Positions 3,138 to 56,001 of a stretch of 64,000 nt of DNA are shown piece after piece. The stretch lies in sequence record PQ451753.1. One strand, 5' to 3'. The notes under the pieces were generated by a model. It searched no databases, had not been told where the DNA came from, and saw only the letters and a program-made list of their open reading frames with translations. The position numbers and the translations under genes were made by a program. Every line of letters starts with the position of its first letter. Position 1 is the stretch's first letter.

Positions 3138-3182
3138 CAAAATAAATAGAGACGAAGAGGGTGTTTACCCTCTTCTTTTTTT
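3137..3182. repeat. 46-bp exact repeat, copy 1 (bidirectional terminator)
   Basis: ACAAAATAAATAGAGACGAAGAGGGTGTTTACCCTCTTCTTTTTTT is identical to 21401-21446; stem GAAGAGGGT/ACCCTCTTC. Confidence 0.95.
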
Positions 3183-3395
3183 GTCTCGATATAGTAGATA
3201 AAGGATGGCATAAGTAACTGAGTAAGTAGTGGTTACAATGACTATCATGTTTAAGTAGTCACTAGCGATGGTTGGGTAAATGACACTGTGTAGAAAGGTG
3301 CACATTTCATTGTCTGCACAAGTCAGTAAAAAGATGATCCCATATACGAGTAGGGACATGAATACGGACACTCCTTTCATTTGTACGCTTGTCAT
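3165..3395 (-). CDS. small two-TM membrane protein (holin-like candidate)
   Basis: GGAG SD 6 nt before the ATG at 3395; TATG motif upstream (3430-3433); two hydrophobic segments and basic tail RDKKRRG. Confidence 0.5.
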   Translation of the reverse strand: MTSVQMKGVSVFMSLLVYGIIFLLTCADNEMCTFLHSVIYPTIASDYLNMIVIVTTTYSVTYAILYLLYRDKKRRG

Positions 3396-3541
3396 AAGGT
3401 ACTCCGATTGTCTCACAGATAAGGGTTCTCATAGGATTTCTTTTTTTGCTAACATTACACCGTAGATCTAGTGCCTAACGGGGTTCTGAGTATAAAAAAG
3501 GTAAATGCTATGTGTAGATGCCAAATAGAAGAGGAGACAAC

Positions 3542-5585: not shown

Positions 5586-6242
5586 ATGACTAATGTAGTT
5601 AACCTAGACTTTGGCTTCCGTGACCCAAATGGCTACGACGCGGACGAACGCTTTGACCTACGCCAGAACGCATTACTGATGTCAGTGAATTGGCAAGTTG
5701 ATGTACTACGTGAAGTGGCTATCGATTTGTTTATGCGTGAAGGTGAAGTTGAAATGCATACTGCGGTTCCGCTGTTCGATGTCATGGGGTCGATATACCG
5801 CGATATCTTAATGCCCGCTACTGTCACGTCAGACTTAGGCTTACGTCGTGCACGTACAATCAAAAAGAATTTCTCAACTACATGCTTCCATTTCCCGCTT
5901 AGTGCTATTAAGGAGATGAGTAAGTTTGTAGAAAATGGTGAGGTGCCAACACCACCATTACAAGTAGAAGTCGCATACATCGATTACGATGATGACTATA
6001 CTGAAAGCGAAATCTTCCACACAGTTACCATCGATACACTAACGTTACCAGATAACACGACGATTAATAAGAATATCCTGAATGGGTTGGTAAAGAACGT
6101 AAACAGTCTCGTCGAGATGAACGGCGGGTTCAGTAAAGGTACTATTGCCGATGATGGTACGAGTCCTGCACTGATTGGTTTTATTCCATACTCAGAAGTT
6201 CAGTACATTCGAATTTCTCTAGTTATCTCAGAACTTAAATAA
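5586..6242 (+). CDS. hypothetical protein
   Basis: ORF track; start at GGAGATAATAATG. Confidence 0.8.
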   Translation: MTNVVNLDFGFRDPNGYDADERFDLRQNALLMSVNWQVDVLREVAIDLFMREGEVEMHTAVPLFDVMGSIYRDILMPATVTSDLGLRRARTIKKNFSTTCFHFPLSAIKEMSKFVENGEVPTPPLQVEVAYIDYDDDYTESEIFHTVTIDTLTLPDNTTINKNILNGLVKNVNSLVEMNGGFSKGTIADDGTSPALIGFIPYSEVQYIRISLVISELK

Positions 6243-12104: not shown

Positions 12105-12260
12105 ATGTCTAAGCGCATATACCGAACTGACCGATGGAAAAGAAACACACCGTTTTACCGTACGGTTAATCGACGATTGGCAAACTTGTTGGGTTTACCA
12201 CGTGACCGTTATGGTGTAGCACTCTCTCCTTTATCGGTACAGGAACGAAAGTCAAAATAG
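12105..12260 (+). CDS. 51-aa basic protein (not in ORF track)
   Basis: SD GAGGTG; MSKRIYRTDRWKRNTPFYRTVNRRLANLLGLPRDRYGVALSPLSVQERKSK*. Confidence 0.6.
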   Translation: MSKRIYRTDRWKRNTPFYRTVNRRLANLLGLPRDRYGVALSPLSVQERKSK

Positions 12261-12280
12261 ATATATTTCATTAAAAGGAC
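12253..12280 (+). promoter_or_regulatory. putative early promoter variant
   Basis: GATATATTTCAT at 12260-12271 (one mismatch to consensus). Confidence 0.55.
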
Positions 12281-12312
12281 ATATGTACAATAAAAATAAA
12301 AGGAGGTGTATT

Positions 12313-12429
12313 ATGTCTAATGGAAATGAATACTTAGGATGGATTATGGATTTACTTGCAGTGACTGGAGGCTTGGCAATTGTCGTGTACTTCATTTACC
12401 TGTGGTGGATTGGTAGAAACCTAAAGTAA
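12313..12429 (+). CDS. 38-aa single-pass membrane peptide (not in ORF track)
   Basis: Perfect SD AAGGAGGT; MSNGNEYLGWIMDLLAVTGGLAIVVYFIYLWWIGRNLK*. Confidence 0.7.
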   Translation: MSNGNEYLGWIMDLLAVTGGLAIVVYFIYLWWIGRNLK

Positions 12430-30379: not shown

Positions 30380-33300
30380 TTACACCTCTGGTTTCTTACG
30401 GGCGATTAGATAGTAACGAGCAGTACTGCCCGCAGGATTAGTTACAGCCGCGCTGCCTTTAAGCTTAGTTGTAATGTTGACAGTAAGTCCCGATAGCCAA
30501 GCTCTAGCATAAGCCAGTTTAACACTAGACCCACTTGTGTTGAATGCTACCACTGCATGACAATCGGCTTCTGTAAAGCCCGCAGGGATAGGAATCTTGT
30601 TACCCGGAGCAATGACACCAGTAGCGAACTTAACGGACTCTGCTTGCCTCTCAGAGAGGATACGGATGGTATCCGCAGACGCATAGTAGTTACCAACGTT
30701 TTCGTCAGGACGAAGGATGTTGATAAACGTTGAGTTTGGTTGTGACATACAACCATAACCGAATCTGCCACCTGAACGGAACTGCTGTAGTTCAGTGAAC
30801 TCTTGCAAATCAAATTCATGGACTAATTCAATTGCACTCTTACCATGGTCTTCTAGGTTTGTACTCTTGACGAAGTTTGTAGCCGAAACTGTAAACTTGT
30901 CGCCAGAACGAACCGCAGTAATACGTGAGTAGTTACCTGACCAACCACCAACACTTGAAGTACCACCGCCAGTACGAATCAATTTACGAGATGGTAAGTG
31001 GTAATCATACCAAATATCAAATCGTCCATTAATTACCATATGCGCTTCGGTAGAACGTGCGCGTACTGCACAGATGGTGTGTTCAATACCTTGAGCATCT
31101 TCAACAAACGCTAGGATGATTACTAGGCCATCGTTATCACCATCAGGTGAACCTACTAACGTATCGAAGACGTAATCGCCAACCGGAGCCGGGCTTACGA
31201 AACCTACGAACGTTGCAGAGTTGATTGTACACTTAAGCGTATCAGTTGCTTCAGTATACGTCCAACTGTTTAACTCACCTGGATTGTGTGGCTGTTGCGC
31301 ACTATCTTTAAAGTGGGAGATACGATCCCAAGTATCGAATACTTCTTTAAAGGTAGGTAGCGTTAGCGTATGAATCATCCCCATATTCTCAACATTACCC
31401 AAACTAAATGAGTGTTTGTCAAGGTCAGTGATGTCATTATGCGCACGCTGATCATACTCGTGGTCTTCCAACTCATACAACGTACCTAAACGTGTAGCAC
31501 GCGAAACTTTCAATTCTACAATTTGGGTATCGTTAGTAATCGCATAACCGATGTACATCTCTGTATCGGTATCTTCAGTCTTCGTTAGACTAAAACGATA
31601 GCTACCAACACCATTACCGTTCGAATCGTACGATACACTTACGTAGATATAGAACGTTTTGTTTTGGTAACTTGGGAATCCTGACAACTTCGATAAGTCA
31701 AAGTTTTGTACAGGGAGTGTAACCTCTTCCCCACTAACGTAGAATCTTGCCTCCTCGGTAAAGTAAACCACCCAACCAGACGCTACTTGCGTAGCATGAA
31801 TGATTTGAGAACTACGGTAACTGTTACCCTGAATCTCCGCAACTGTACGACCTAGACTCTTAGCCGAAACAACCTGCGCCGAGTATTCATTCACCGTATC
31901 CACCAAACCAAGGTCCGGATGCCAGTACGATGCGTACATCACGTGCGTGTGAGCATTACGATTACGGAAGTGTAGAACACTACCATCATCTTTATCCAGA
32001 ACAAACTGGAAGATATGACCGCCTGAGTGACCTACGTAGTTTACATACAGCGAATGGTTAAGACAGAACACTTTATGCCCATCGTCAGTTACGCCGCATG
32101 TATTCATACCGAACGATTCATACGAACCCCAACTGGTCACAGAGTTGTTCCAGTTAGCATTAGTAATTAAGTCGCCAATATTCACACTCGTTACGGTGTT
32201 ACCCGACATACCGATCGTACACTTATGCAGTGCTGTAAATACACGGCGTGAAGTCTTCTCAGGATTTGCCCAGTGCACGTAGGTGTATTGGATAAAGCAG
32301 TCAAGTGTATTAGCGCCCGCTTCCCAATCACCGAACACTTGTAACATTACACGGTCATCCCAAAGAGAGCGACCATCTGTTGCAGTATGCAGTGCTCTAA
32401 ATCGTGTACGTAGGTCGTTAATCAAGTTATCCGTCCAAGTCACTTCAGTCGTTGCCGTTTCATTGACTATTTTTGACATACTTGATTTGTACGACGATGA
32501 CAATACAAAACCTTCGTTACGGTTTGTTTCCCAGTTCATTGGCACTCGAAGCATTCTTGCATTCTCACCACTAGGTAACAAACGGCGGTCTGGAGTTGGA
32601 CCCCAACCTGTACCGTCTTCTACGTAACTACCGTTCATGTCATAAGTACATATCGTATCACGACCATCAGTTTGATCACTGATAAGTTTGTTCCCCGGTA
32701 GGAAACCCATGAACTTAGTACCTGCACCCACCACAGAACCGTAAGCACCTTCTAAGTCAGCAGCTGCAATAGTTGTCGGTCTTGACTTACCTGCTTCGAT
32801 ATAATCGAAGATTTCTAACCCGTCAGCTGAACCGAACTCATACACTCTTGGAATGTATGTTGTACCGTAGAAACGGAATGCAAACATCCTGTCCTTACTG
32901 ATTAACACCGGAGCGTTGTTGTTCGGGTTGGCACCAACCCACGCCTCAGCAGGAGCAGACTTACCCGCAGGCATCGCCCATCGGTTGTTATACAACTCAA
33001 TTGGGAAACAGTCTGCATTATCCGACACCATCTGCATTGTATCTAAATCCAACACAAACGAATGTGATAACGGATAACCTGTCGAACCATCAGAACGCGA
33101 GTAATACGTTCTACCGTAAACCTGAACGCGTAACTTATTATCCTTAATATAGAACATTGAGTTTTGCGTTGAGTGGCGAACGTTATTTGACCCCGTCCAG
33201 TGACCGTTATCACGACGGTGAATGATTGGCTTACCACCATCCAAAGTTGTTGATTGACCGATGTTAGTAAAGAAGAACGTATCAATATCACTTTGTGACT

Positions 33301-44172: not shown

Positions 44173-44236
44173 TGTTTTTACCTCATGTGTTAATAAAATT
44201 CGTTAGAAACCAGTCACGTGTCGGACTGGCTTATAG

Positions 44237-44247
44237 TCATAGTATGA
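44237..44247. promoter_or_regulatory. back-to-back TATG late-promoter motifs (TCATA-G-TATGA)
   Basis: Interrupted palindrome gives TATG on both strands between divergent structural genes; TATG is the phiKZ late-promoter consensus. Confidence 0.5.
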
Positions 44248-44275
44248 ACGACTCAGTATTAATAGGAGCAACCAT

Positions 44276-45514
44276 ATGTCCAGCCATTACACACTGGCAC
44301 CGACTCCAGCATTTGCCAAAACAAAAGATACGAATCGCTGGATTGAAGTTGATATTTCCGATAAGCCGCTTAAGGATTTATTTGCCCTTTACCGTAAGGT
44401 AGAGGTACCAGTCTTCGACTTCTTTGGTAAAGCGCTGACGCTTTACATTCATGATTACGAACACGAACTAATGAATCGTGATTACACGTTGTCAAGTTGG
44501 TTTGAACGAATCGGTGATCGTCGCCTTAACCTAACTGACGGACATCCTAAGTTAACGTTCTCTTACGTTAACTACGTTCCAGTCAACTACCACACCTCAA
44601 CAGTTAAACCTGCTAAGGCAGGCTACCATCCATCACAACAAGTTGCATTAGAAGACTACGACGATTTGATTATCGACATCGAGGGTTACGACCCGAACTA
44701 TGTCGCTAAACATTGTCTATTCAGTGTGAATGGGTTTGTGTTCCCATCTAAGTATCAGAACTACGGTGTTCGTGTTTTACATGCAGCAGATGCTGTACGT
44801 GATAGCACTAACATGGAAGCCGGTTTCTTAAACTTTGAAAAGGTAGGTGCCATCAAACAAGTGCCCATCACTAAGAACATGATTACTAAAGTCGACGACA
44901 GTAAAACATGGTTCGACCGTATCACAATTGATACTACTGAATACATTGGCAATAAAACCGTCGGTATCGTCCTTGGTGGCTATTTACACTTACTTGATGG
45001 ATTGGTTAAGGTTATCGGTCCAAACACGCTCTCGATGTCAATGCGTAACTATAATCTACGCGAACGTGTCATAAACTCAATGAAAGAGTTAGACTTGGAG
45101 TTCATGGGGCTAGACCAAGTAAACAACAGTGTACCTCTCAATGAATTCTTAAACGAGCAGAATGTAATTGATTACCTTACCAGTAAATATAGCTTTCTGG
45201 TTTTAATTGACAACTGCGAGATGAGCGTCGATTATGAAGGTGTATCTAAGTCGGCTATGTTGGGTACGTACATCATTACTAAAGACAACCGCTTAGGTCG
45301 TCTAGTTGACCACATTGGTAAAGGTTTAGATTACTGGCCTAACTACGAATGCGGACAATGGGCATTAAAGACTACACGTTTTAATGTTGCATCAGACTTG
45401 CATGAAACAAACGGATGGGAAAAGCTCACTCGCATTAACGATGCTGCGATTGGACATAAGCCAACCGAAGAGTTACAAGTTAGAATGATTAACTATTTTG
45501 GTCGAGACAAATAA
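44276..45514 (+). CDS. phiKZ-like virion (baseplate) structural protein
   Basis: 412-aa ORF, SD AGGAG, TATG upstream, tail-module context; CLFSVNGF and VLGGYLH motifs recalled from jumbo-phage structural proteins. Confidence 0.6.
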   Translation: MSSHYTLAPTPAFAKTKDTNRWIEVDISDKPLKDLFALYRKVEVPVFDFFGKALTLYIHDYEHELMNRDYTLSSWFERIGDRRLNLTDGHPKLTFSYVNYVPVNYHTSTVKPAKAGYHPSQQVALEDYDDLIIDIEGYDPNYVAKHCLFSVNGFVFPSKYQNYGVRVLHAADAVRDSTNMEAGFLNFEKVGAIKQVPITKNMITKVDDSKTWFDRITIDTTEYIGNKTVGIVLGGYLHLLDGLVKVIGPNTLSMSMRNYNLRERVINSMKELDLEFMGLDQVNNSVPLNEFLNEQNVIDYLTSKYSFLVLIDNCEMSVDYEGVSKSAMLGTYIITKDNRLGRLVDHIGKGLDYWPNYECGQWALKTTRFNVASDLHETNGWEKLTRINDAAIGHKPTEELQVRMINYFGRDK

Positions 45515-45559
45515 AAAAGTTGGAGAGAGGGTTTAGCCCTCTCCCTCTTTTATTTTTTT
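45505..45559. terminator. bidirectional terminator
   Basis: ACAAATAAAAAA, GAGAGGG-TTTAG-CCCTCTC, TTTTATTTTTTT. Confidence 0.85.
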
Positions 45560-45720
45560 GGATCTCCCTTTCCTCTCTTCCTTTCTCCTTTCCTTAACAA
45601 ACCTTACCTCTATCCATCTCTCCTATCCCTCACGCGCGCCTCCAGTCGCGCTCTCCCACACAGGAGAGCCCTCCCAAGGAACCGCTTCAAGGCCGCTATT
45701 AAATAGACGTCTGAGTTAAA
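45505..45720 (-). ncRNA. candidate GGA-repeat small RNA (CsrB/RsmY-like CsrA sponge)
   Basis: 12 GGA motifs on the - strand within 45542-45674, mostly A(N)GGA, one in a hairpin loop; no credible ORF; ends in an intrinsic terminator. Confidence 0.4.
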
Positions 45721-45754
45721 ATTTACTGTATATATTTTATACAGGGATTTTAAC

Positions 45755-45806
45755 GGCTTTAACTCTATGAATAATAAAGACTATTTTCATAGATAAAGTT
45801 AAAGCC
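45755..45806. other. long imperfect inverted repeat
   Basis: GGCTTTAACT/AGTTAAAGCC (10 bp) plus CTATGAA/TTCATAG (7 bp). Confidence 0.8.
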
Positions 45807-45833
45807 TAATTTGATCTGTATTTTAGAGAGTAT

Positions 45834-46904
45834 TTAGTGCGGCCCGTGCGAATCGAAGTTGCCTGATTTCGCTTTGATTGTGTCACACTCAATTGTGTCC
45901 GCTTTCAACCCACCTTTTACGGTTAGTCCTTTCTTAAAGTCCGCAAAGTTGTTGACCACACAAAGACCACCACCGCCGGAGCCACCGCCACCTACTGATA
46001 GACCTGCACATGTCAATAGACCTGTTGCAACTGTCTTAGGTGCGTTAGAGGTTACTTTGTCTGCTTTGAAGAGGATGTCTGAGGCGTCGTAGGAGATGTT
46101 GGTTGCTTTTGCTGTCCAGTCGGTTGTTTTGAAGTTGATGGTATCACTACTATCAACCGTCCACGCACTGGTCTTGAACGAAATAGACTTGCTCGCATTT
46201 AAAATGAAATCCGTACATTCCCATTTAACCGTGTTCTCTGCTTTGAAGTACATACTGTCTGGTGCATAACCGTAGATGTTCTTCTTATCTAAGCGGAACT
46301 CAGTTTCCATGGCATTCTTAAAACCAATAACGGTATCAGCACTATTAAGATACATCACATTGTTATCTGTATCAACAAGCTGGAAGACACCGTCCCCTGT
46401 ATTTAACTGCATGGTGTAGCCAAAGGGCTCACCGTTCGCTTGTGACGTCTGTAGAGTGATGGACTTGTTGTGTGTCGATATCTCTAAGAAGTAAGCGTTA
46501 GATAAATCATCTTTAATTGGATTGTTCGGATCGGCAGACCAAGCATAAACAACTGTCTCTAATCGTTTAACATTAGAAACGTTCATGTCTGTCCAATAAT
46601 AGCGGTCAGTATTACCGAGACGCCAAATAAGGACTTGGTCATTACGACGTACGTCAGGTGGGGTGATTCTGTTAGTATTGAACTTCAACCATTTAGCAGT
46701 CACCGCAGAACCACGGACTACGTTAACAATCTCTTCACCTTCATCGGTTTGATAAGCTTCTTCATCTTCCTCTGGCTGGTCTAACACCGACTCCAATACA
46801 CCGAATCGGTATTCAATGGGCACAACCTTAACCTCACTCTCTCCAAGGTCTTTAACGTTGGCAACCAATCCCCACGAGTGAAAATGGAGTTGTGATAATT
46901 CCAT
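45834..46904 (-). CDS. baseplate central spike (OB-fold plus beta-helix), phiKZ-like
   Basis: N-terminal OB-like region (WLKFNTNRITPPDVRRNDQVLIW), repeated beta-strands, His-containing C-terminus (SHGPH). Confidence 0.7.
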   Translation of the reverse strand: MELSQLHFHSWGLVANVKDLGESEVKVVPIEYRFGVLESVLDQPEEDEEAYQTDEGEEIVNVVRGSAVTAKWLKFNTNRITPPDVRRNDQVLIWRLGNTDRYYWTDMNVSNVKRLETVVYAWSADPNNPIKDDLSNAYFLEISTHNKSITLQTSQANGEPFGYTMQLNTGDGVFQLVDTDNNVMYLNSADTVIGFKNAMETEFRLDKKNIYGYAPDSMYFKAENTVKWECTDFILNASKSISFKTSAWTVDSSDTINFKTTDWTAKATNISYDASDILFKADKVTSNAPKTVATGLLTCAGLSVGGGGSGGGGLCVVNNFADFKKGLTVKGGLKADTIECDTIKAKSGNFDSHGPH

Positions 46905-55951: not shown

Positions 55952-56001
55952 AGTGCACTCCGTAGGACTATCTTTAACTTACATAATAAATAGGTGACAA
56001 T

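Follow-up and report, generated by a model that had tools for sequence, protein, structure and literature searches.

Bacterial Csr/Rsm sponge RNAs, among them CsrB, CsrC and CsrD of Vibrio and RsmY and RsmZ of Pseudomonas, are dense in GGA and A(N)GGA motifs, present GGA in repeated hairpin loops, end in Rho-independent terminators and occur in several copies per genome. CrcZ/CrcY-type sponges of Hfq titrate a global RNA-binding protein through repeated purine-rich motifs of A-rich character and are likewise host-encoded. In translational riboregulators that sequester the Shine-Dalgarno (SD) sequence in a leader, an anti-SD-like CUCCUU pairs with an SD-like AAGGAG. To our knowledge few jumbo-phage non-coding RNAs (ncRNAs) are known, none of them with a defined function. 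In phiKZ, PHIKZ298 yields a 3'UTR-derived ncRNA of ~100 nt with two stem-loops, which was found by Grad-seq and seen on Northern blots (PMC8545117).

The window analysed here is a stretch of 64,000 nt from record PQ451753.1, belonging to Vibrio phage pVp-JHP1101 (JHP1101), a phiKZ-like, nucleus-forming jumbo phage with a genome of 230 kb. Its Vibrio host has CsrA. The element under study, e1, lies in a gap of 319 nt (45515-45833) between two convergent genes:

44276-45514, plus strand: convergent neighbour, virion structural protein, 412 aa, PHROG 3337.
45515-45559, serving both strands: bidirectional intrinsic terminator with its stem at 45522-45545, common to both convergent units.
45834-46904, minus strand: baseplate spike gene, 356 aa, annotated as virion structural protein.

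The spike protein matches PHROG 3216 (baseplate assembly protein, E 2e-103) and, weakly, Pfam Phage_spike, and has relatives in 290 phiKZ-like phage records. A preliminary description had taken the gap for the longest apparently non-coding one, a place that falls to the annotated gap at 3138-3541 (404 nt); the intrinsic terminator that it placed at the end of the segment is confirmed, and proves to act in both directions. From the spike stop (45834) to the next gene no other terminator occurs, and the spike mRNA is predicted to run into e1, 3' of the spike gene. The layout of PHIKZ298, from stop codon to terminator with none between, is therefore shared by e1, and both RNAs belong to phiKZ-like jumbo phages, hold no small ORF and form stem-loops. 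They differ in that e1, at a predicted ~180-230 nt against ~100 nt, has a three-helix core and a purine tail. A tRNA/tmRNA search of the DNA found none.

Conservation of the element is unusually high. Over 45515-45720, JHP1101 and phage pVa-21 share 98% identity, which places the segment at the 99th percentile of 200-nt windows; the window as a whole averages 82%, and the flanking genes reach 84% and 92%. In deeper lineages the core keeps pace with the spike gene (82% vs 81% and 71% vs 73% identity) and changes more slowly than the other neighbour, a pattern that points to purifying selection. Relatives with a spike protein of 74% identity or more carry the element (L007, L008, L009, L011, L017-L019), while those with spike proteins of 55-64% identity (L012, L013, L016) have just a terminator gap of 40-56 nt. 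BLAST against phage records returned JHP1101 and pVa-21 only, and IMG/VR searches with both flanking proteins and three DNA patterns returned no relatives. In JGI metagenomes and GTDB genomes nothing was found, or four chance matches inside unrelated sequence, so that these collections hold no host-genome homologue of the core motif. A decaying relic of a former leader or gene fragment, devoid of present function, is very improbable at a locus conserved as well as, or better than, its neighbouring genes. The same holds for a small coding gene: mechanical ORFs of 53 aa (plus strand) and 26 aa (minus strand) do exist, but both are broken in relatives by frame-shifting indels and by loss of a TTG start, in line with the original view of the gap as non-coding. 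The compensatory changes described below argue for RNA structure against either account, and the coding reading is disfavoured.

The element has a paralogue, e2, at record positions ~177606-177860, 70 kb away, and a covariance model search of the whole genome recovered exactly these two loci. Adjoining e2 is a third candidate, e3, a purine-rich RNA unrelated in sequence. Both had escaped the preliminary description. The minus-strand tail of the e1 terminator, a T-run followed by ATTTGT, is the usual form at other gene ends of the phage and recurs at e2 and e3 in relatives. In JHP1101, e2 passes without a break into the translation start of gene _209 (ribosome-binding site and ATG); Pfam and PHROGs searches with _209 and its neighbours gave no lead to function. 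In pVa-21 and L030 e2 is a stand-alone unit with its own T-run, and e2 must have its own promoter, because no gene lies upstream on its strand. Together these data point to an undescribed, conserved and folded ncRNA family, of which each genome of the pVa-21-like Vibrio jumbo phages carries two copies.

The two settings bear on whether the element acts in cis, as a UTR that stabilises or localises the late spike mRNA (e1) or as the leader of gene _209 in JHP1101 (e2). That spike gene and element are not separated by a terminator, and that e2 of JHP1101 runs directly to a start site, speak for this. Against it, a single module serves as 3' end, 5' leader and stand-alone unit; e2 is retained in pVa-21 and L031, which lack _209, with 100% identity over 227 nt between JHP1101 and pVa-21; and in more distant relatives the element is missing after the spike gene. 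A cis role is therefore considered unlikely. Action in trans would be the most likely mode, since one module occurs in three settings: downstream of the spike gene, by itself and closed by a terminator of its own, and ahead of an inserted gene.

The RNA read from the minus strand is composed of the following parts, in 5' to 3' order:

45685-45692, minus strand: conserved 5' block CYUURAAG (here CCUUGAAG), in 10 of 10 family members, at both loci.
45674-45681, minus strand: 5' strand of helix P1, UUCCUUGG, anti-SD-like, pairing with 45590-45597.
45650-45669, minus strand: hairpin H2 (GCUCUCC / GGAGAGC).
45634-45651, minus strand: hairpin Hb, a GCGCG stem with an 8-nt loop, ACUGGAGG.
45598-45633, minus strand: purine-rich internal region between Hb and P1, with three GGA.
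45590-45597, minus strand: 3' strand of P1, UUAAGGAA, SD-like, pairing with 45674-45681.
45560-45589, minus strand: homopurine tail with 4-5 GGA, predicted to be single-stranded from its sequence and unpaired probabilities.

Pairing was analysed across 10 family sequences from both loci. Paired cells amount to 86.7%, against 40-58% with the partners slid, and a covariation score of 0.269 compares with 0.20 at most, with double changes in 12 cells; none of 500 shuffles reaches the observed paired fraction, covariation and double-change values. These figures indicate a folded RNA in which three helices, P1, H2 and Hb, carry compensatory changes. The G-U pairs within them fit the purine (minus) strand only and become A-C mismatches on the other, which supports the strand originally proposed. 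A functional folded RNA on the minus strand is rated as probable. In P1, 91% of cells are paired across the 10 sequences, a C-G to U-A double change is seen and the G-U pairs are near-invariant; in e2 CC replaces UU in the 3' strand, so that G-U pairs become G-C. H2 has compensatory changes in three of its five pairs across lineages and is missing from the e2 copy of JHP1101/pVa-21, and an alternative partner for its strand suggested by RNAalifold breaks in lineages B and C. Hb is paired in 78% of cells, with C-G to U-G and G-C to G-U changes, and its loop GACUGGAG is invariant in nine of 10 members. In the tenth, L030, the stem is rebuilt as GCGCC/GGCGC around a different loop that lacks GGA. 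A competing helix, Ha, in which CUCC would pair with GGAG in the Hb loop, was dropped because L030 has neither partner yet retains Hb. The folded core, with two GGA-containing blocks base-paired, is absent from the preliminary description, which had recognised the Hb hairpin with GGA in its loop.

P1 resembles the duplex of SD-sequestering leaders in that a CUCCUU-type strand pairs with an AAGGAG-type strand. The element departs from such leaders in two respects, as no start codon follows the SD-like strand in e1, and in e2 of JHP1101 the real ribosome-binding site of _209 lies ~100 nt further on.

A role at the DNA level, as H-DNA, replication origin, packaging site or operator array, is disfavoured, and is judged highly improbable. 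The mirror repeat at 45578-45595 that had suggested H-DNA is real, palindromes lie upstream of the core, and the cumulative GC skew has a minimum near 46-48 kb. The repeat, however, is found in JHP1101 and pVa-21 and is not conserved in other relatives, being interrupted by CCTT in lineage B and different in lineage C; the skew minimum coincides with a switch in gene orientation; the helices keep G-U pairs, which would be mismatches on the other strand; and the distant second copy, e2, argues against a unique origin.

Upstream of the core, between it and the spike stop, three further features are recognised:

45755-45806, minus strand: long AT-rich hairpin (inverted repeat) directly after the spike stop, with no U-run.
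45726-45744, no strand assigned: palindrome CTGTA-N9-TACAG, upstream of the RNA core.
45694-45710, minus strand: H0, an AT-rich imperfect palindrome, putative 5' hairpin or promoter core of the RNA.

The long hairpin is kept in lineages A and B, with TATG inside in both, and a different hairpin takes its place in lineage C. The palindrome shows a symmetric (compensatory) change between JHP1101 and pVa-21 and recurs upstream of e2 and of the early promoter at record position 5923; it is missing in lineage C. The arms of H0 differ in sequence but keep their complementarity in most members, and an AT-rich block (T-N-T-A-A/T-T) stands at a fixed distance upstream of CYUURAAG in all family members, e1 and e2. 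The early-promoter motif of the phage, GATATATATCAT, is absent from e1 and e2, and a sigma-70 scan of the gap found no site. The GacA/UvrY box is TGTAAG-N6-CTTACA (PMC8450108); the upstream palindrome, TGTA-N9-TACA, departs from the GacA/UvrY/VarA box in inner bases and spacing. By the same misfit LexA-, CRP- and GacA-type readings of the palindrome were rejected. The C-rich, G-free plus strand could also be read as a Rho-utilisation site; this was set aside, as phiKZ-like phages rely on polymerases of their own for transcription (PMC7598289) and the evidence from structure points to the minus strand.

The base composition of the element is exceptional. Positions 45562-45633 form the longest G-free run of the window on the plus strand (72 nt; the runner-up has 37 nt), and the minus strand of 45542-45674 holds 12 GGA in 133 nt, nine of which have A at -1 or -2, much as first described. 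Windows of 133 nt average 1.1 GGA (sd 1.06), this segment being the unique maximum, and at least nine GGA per 133 nt occur at three places only in the whole 230-kb genome, namely e1, e2 and e3. The initial expectation of one or two GGA ignored local composition (A 31%, G 41%). Mono- and dinucleotide shuffles give 7-10 GGA against 11-12 observed (p 0.01-0.3, and 0.2-0.3 in one lineage), or 1.1-1.9 times the composition-based expectation, and GAG and AGG are as common as GGA. The excess is mostly purine richness rather than GGA as such, because shuffles with the segment's own base content already yield 7-8 GGA (p about 0.01-0.1; 0.2-0.3 in one lineage). GGA has a positional conservation of 0.26, next to 0.25 for triplets overall and 0.45 for AAG, so that GGA is not favoured over other purine triplets; selection for GGA as such, in the form of an excess joined to better conservation than that of other triplets, is not seen. 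Relatives nevertheless do not retain the purine skew at the cost of the motif, as each of the nine family members examined has 8-13 GGA, six to nine of them predicted to be unpaired. Tandem repeats were searched for and not found, which rules out a ToxI-like repeat array.

GGA occurs in a hairpin loop in Hb only (nine of 10 members), two GGA blocks are paired in P1 and H2, and the remainder lie in single-stranded purine runs. The tail is purine-rich in all members, while its sequence turns over between lineages; its GGA have unpaired probabilities of 0.33-0.84, at least 0.5 for four of the five.

The likeness to Csr/Rsm sponges lies in dense GGA/A(N)GGA (here 12 in 133 nt), GGA in at least one hairpin loop, a Rho-independent terminator and several copies per genome. 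The differences are that the element has no Rfam sequence or structure match and no GacA/UvrY/VarA box, and that it offers a mostly unstructured homopurine run with a marginal excess over composition where the sponges offer repeated hairpin loops. The window gave no match to Rfam 15 at gathering score, and permissive thresholds gave noise only, with no Csr/Rsm family at E<=10 in 45400-45950 or at E<=5 in the e2/e3 region. The family, defined from sequence alone by a fold with covariation support, paralogous copies, purifying selection and a conserved set of predicted exposed GGA/GGAG, is also phage-encoded and limited to one phage clade, unlike these sponges.

In the proposed mechanism, the minus strand would encode an ncRNA of ~180-230 nt ending at the bidirectional terminator, either transcribed separately or formed by the 3'-terminal part of the late spike mRNA. 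Its folded core would be closed by the long-range P1, pairing anti-SD-like CUCCUUGG with SD-like UUAAGGAG and enclosing H2 and Hb, with the single-stranded homopurine tail as the second part. If this RNA is stable and acts in trans, as we infer, its six to nine exposed GGA/GGAG in the Hb loop, internal purine region and tail may act in the cytoplasm to titrate a host factor that binds GGA, CsrA being the leading candidate. Titration of CsrA would relieve competition at phage ribosome-binding sites of GGAG type, or reset the host Csr regulon; GGA occurs in the ribosome-binding region of 48 of the 68 phage genes in the window. The CsrA sponge first proposed thus stands as regards GGA density, which relatives keep, and falls short as regards CsrA itself, which neither an Rfam match, nor the marginal GGA excess, nor a GacA/VarA box singles out. 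For CsrA in particular, the evidence from sequence is weak. We regard the ncRNA family as real and new, a protein decoy with CsrA as leading candidate as plausible, and put the probability that the RNA is a CsrA decoy at roughly 0.3. A phage would not obviously gain from such a decoy, because in Serratia titration of RsmA raises CRISPR-Cas expression (PMC8450108). More speculative is a phage set of CsrA-titrating RNAs (e1, e2 and perhaps e3), exported late in infection to the cytoplasm, that would free GGAG-type ribosome-binding sites and switch the host Csr/quorum-sensing circuit in parallel to host CsrB/C/D.

A trans-acting regulatory RNA may instead have a different partner, such as Hfq, ProQ or a phage protein (e.g. 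a nucleus-associated RNA-binding one), or may pair through its purine tail with pyrimidine-rich targets. The core (CYUURAAG, UUGGGAG and the Hb loop) is better conserved than any single tail GGA, which is more suggestive of a surface that is specifically recognised than of a generic array of GGA, and the existence of two paralogues together with an unrelated third purine-rich RNA would suit such a role. No candidate partner can be named, however, and the turnover of the tail between lineages makes it a poor seed for base pairing. The proposed titration of a global RNA-binding protein by repeated purine-rich motifs is shared with CrcZ/CrcY, but the motif of the phage RNA is GGA, and the A-R-N periodicity of its tail, counted on the sequence, is no better than composition predicts. 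This alternative is held to be possible but doubtful.

The RNA could also mimic the SD sequence, with AAGGAGG-type runs that bind the 16S anti-SD of free 30S subunits; alternatively, its internal CUCCUU could take the part of the anti-SD. The best-conserved purine block is GGUUUGUUAAGGAGG, GGAG occurs five to seven times per member, P1 is itself an SD/anti-SD-like duplex, and a 5'UTR-derived ncRNA of phiKZ co-sediments with 30S subunits (PMC8545117). Yet the strongest SD-like block is paired in P1 and hence not free, any single RNA would be vastly outnumbered by ribosomes, and e1 has no downstream start codon, so that a ribosome decoy seems unlikely.

Were CsrA or another global RNA-binding protein titrated, phages would seize host post-transcriptional control by decoy RNAs as well as by proteins, and titration would offer direct access to the way in which a nucleus-forming phage manages cytoplasmic translation. 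The set of CsrA sponges, if true, would be the first phage-encoded example of the Csr type, evolved independently of the bacterial ones. Whatever its function, the family fills an annotation gap in pVa-21-like phages, in whose records the element loci appear as blank stretches of 319 nt to 1.5 kb.

The stretch is identical to positions 62001-126000 of PQ451753.1, Vibrio phage pVp-JHP1101 (JHP1101), a 230-kb phiKZ-like genome whose nearest sequenced relative is pVa-21 and which encodes a nuclear shell protein as well as multisubunit RNA polymerases. The GGA-rich element, here e1, lies on the - strand between two convergent genes:

44276-45514, + strand: virion protein of 412 aa, convergent neighbour of e1
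45515-45833: 319-nt gap holding e1
45834-46904, - strand: baseplate spike, convergent neighbour of e1

The gap had been described as the longest in the window; it is present, at 319 nt, but the window's longest is 3138-3541, a 404-nt gap without annotated gene that shares 80% identity with pVa-21. Its apparently non-coding nature is upheld, as the mechanical ORFs lose start codons and frames in relatives; the coding reading was rejected on this ground, and a relic or coding sequence is very improbable.

The other concrete features of the preliminary description were all recovered. The G-free run on the + strand at 45562-45633 spans 72 nt and is the window's longest, 12 GGA are counted on the - strand of 45542-45674, the GCGCG/CGCGC hairpin is present with the loop ACUGGAGG, and the intrinsic terminator lies at 45515-45559 and is bidirectional. 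Compared with the genome background, which averages 1.1-1.4 GGA per 133 nt, the density of e1 is extreme, and at least 9 GGA per 133 nt occur at just three places in a whole-genome scan of 230 kb, performed on separate pieces that were never joined (boundaries at record positions 31000, 62000, 126000, 161000 and 196000 and the circular junction), so that an element split at a boundary could be missed. The chance expectation of one to two GGA proposed earlier ignores local composition: shuffles keeping the base or dinucleotide content of the segment give 7-10 against the 11-12 observed. GAG and AGG are as frequent in the segment as GGA. Purine richness is the exceptional feature of e1, and a GGA-specific signal beyond it is weak.

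Between JHP1101 and pVa-21, 4 of 206 positions differ in 45515-45720 (98% identity); the window is 82% identical overall (200-nt windows have an sd of 8.8%), and the genes flanking e1 are 84% and 92% identical. A graded series of relatives was obtained by a spike-protein search of public assemblies, and their DNA was fetched. Where the spike is 74-90% identical, gene order is kept with a gap of 315-320 nt alignable with e1, while at 55-64% identity gene order is kept with an intergenic distance of merely 40-56 nt; e1 was therefore acquired by one clade. The phages with e1 fall into lineage A (JHP1101, pVa-21), lineage B (L007, L008, L017-L019) and lineage C (L009-L011), across which the e1 core keeps pace with the DNA of the spike gene and diverges less rapidly than the second neighbouring gene; in a non-coding sequence this amounts to purifying selection.

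A second GGA-dense tract, pyrimidine-rich on the + strand and with 11 GGA per 133 nt, is found at record positions about 177606-177860, within the piece of the genome labelled L023:

L023:15463-16605, - strand: gene _209, 380 aa
L023:16606-16860, - strand: e2, paralogue of e1, without annotation in the records
L023:17290-17560, + strand: e3, a purine-rich candidate non-coding RNA next to e2 on the opposite strand, 10 GGA per 133 nt
L025:2218-2503, L031:3575-3855 and L030:1886-2072: homologues of e3

The layout of e1 and e2 is the same: the palindrome CTGTA-N9-TACAG comes first, followed by an AT-rich block, then by CYUURAAG, CUCCUUGGGAG and GCGACUGGAG, and last by a long tail of purines. The e2 copies of JHP1101 and pVa-21 are 100% identical over 227 nt. 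Downstream, the RNA strand of JHP1101 leads into gene _209 by way of its ribosome-binding site, whereas in pVa-21 this gene is missing and the phage's usual terminator tail follows instead. Gene _209, without a match to any Pfam or PHROG family, occurs in JHP1101 and the relative L030 but in neither pVa-21 nor the relative L031, and is an insertion/deletion that falls precisely where e2 meets its terminator. Other variants of the locus are seen in L030 and L031; that of L031 is closer to e1 than to e2, and that of L030 ends in a T-run ahead of its own _209 homologue. Across the entire JHP1101 genome, a covariance model of the core picks out e1 and e2 and nothing else, and it has no match in the distant relatives.

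The alignment to this model comprises ten distinct sequences, drawn from the two loci. In the long-range helix P1, CUCCUUGG pairs with UUAAGGAG across about 85 nt, with 91% of cells paired; one pair is either C-G or U-A, and two are either G-U or G-C. Of the two hairpins enclosed by P1, H2 shows compensatory changes in three of five pairs, while Hb has 78% of cells paired, with changes of the C-G to U-G kind and a closing pair inverted in L030. Taken together, the three helices have 86.7% of cells paired, against 40-58% with slid partners, and a covariation score of 0.269, against at most 0.20, and none of 500 shuffles reaches the observed values; these counts come from an alignment fitted to the model and from few lineages, and two bases are claimed by both H2 and Hb. 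Read from the opposite strand, the near-invariant G-U pairs would become A-C mismatches, and at e1, e2 and e3 alike it is on the purine strand that the terminator tail, a T-run then ATTTGT, is oriented as is usual for the phage. The - strand is therefore taken as the functional one, at the RNA level, and the RNA is predicted to consist of a folded core with a single-stranded purine tail after it, rather than of an unstructured repeat array. The same form of terminator tail is common at many gene ends (e.g. 45515-45530, - strand) and can be used for orienting this phage's transcription units.

A functional RNA on the - strand is assigned a probability of roughly 0.8. The family of folded, purine-rich non-coding RNAs that e1 and e2 represent is real and had not been described before; it is restricted to pVa-21-like Vibrio jumbo phages, each genome having two paralogous loci. 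A DNA element has little to recommend it: the mirror repeat at 45578-45595 exists where first placed but is lineage-specific, contrary to the H-DNA proposal, and, as to the suggested origin, the cumulative GC-skew minimum near 46-48 kb falls where gene orientation changes, and there is a second copy elsewhere.

Among mechanisms, a protein decoy acting through exposed GGA/GGAG motifs is ranked first, with CsrA as its leading, still tentative, candidate. CsrA is present in the host, and could compete at phage ribosome-binding regions because GGA occurs there in 48 of the window's 68 phage genes. In e1, nine of 12 GGA are A(N)GGA and one sits in the loop of a conserved hairpin, and every family member keeps 8-13 GGA, 6-9 of them predicted unpaired. 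Against this, the GGA excess over composition is marginal, the triplets, though retained in number, are no more conserved than other purine triplets, the helices bury two GGA blocks, and the loop GGA is lost in L030. Another RNA-binding partner, or base-pairing, is possible if doubtful, and a decoy of the SD/30S type is unlikely. Likened earlier to Csr/Rsm-type RNAs, e1 resembles no such family in Rfam. No GacA/VarA box was found at e1, its palindrome differing in inner bases and spacing from the box of this type printed in PMC8450108. Literature searches turned up CsrA-like proteins encoded by phages and no CsrA sponge RNA of phage origin; the nearest parallel is phiKZ's 3'UTR-derived ncRNA (PMC8545117).

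As no terminator was found between the spike gene and e1, late spike transcripts should include e1, while e2 must have its own promoter because no gene lies upstream on its strand. A cis-acting UTR element is improbable, given that the same module serves as 3' end, stand-alone unit and leader. Upstream, all members share a single element, an imperfect palindrome rich in A and T that stands 6-7 nt ahead of the conserved 5' block; it matches neither the early-promoter motif GATATATATCAT, derived from about 20 intergenic copies, nor a strict TATG. Two repeated elements were mapped:

Window 568, 5530, 12260, 20610, 52458 and 60279, + strand: examples of GATATATATCAT
Window 45726-45744, L023:16838-16856 and L020:5923-5941: palindrome CTGTA-N9-TACAG

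The early-promoter-like GATATATATCAT has an A/T-rich upstream part and about 20 good copies before + strand operons genome-wide. CTGTA-N9-TACAG has three genome copies, one ahead of e1, one ahead of e2 and a third immediately upstream of an early promoter. Its changes between JHP1101 and pVa-21 are symmetric. It may represent an RNA hairpin or the operator of some phage regulator.

The candidate e3 is unrelated to e1 and e2 and conserved in four relatives. It has a terminator, a CCAGGAUGGAUGG block and conserved hairpins, in one of which a compensatory change is seen; the TATG motif upstream resembles that of phiKZ late promoters (PMC7598289). TATG motifs also occur on both strands in the divergent-promoter gaps 44173-44275 and 55952-56001, which are 99-100% identical to pVa-21 between flanking genes of 74-84%. 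The stretch 12105-12429, 97-98% identical to pVa-21 and unannotated there, is annotated in JHP1101 with two tiny ORFs, of 51 and 38 aa; the shorter has a strong ribosome-binding site, and its product is hydrophobic.
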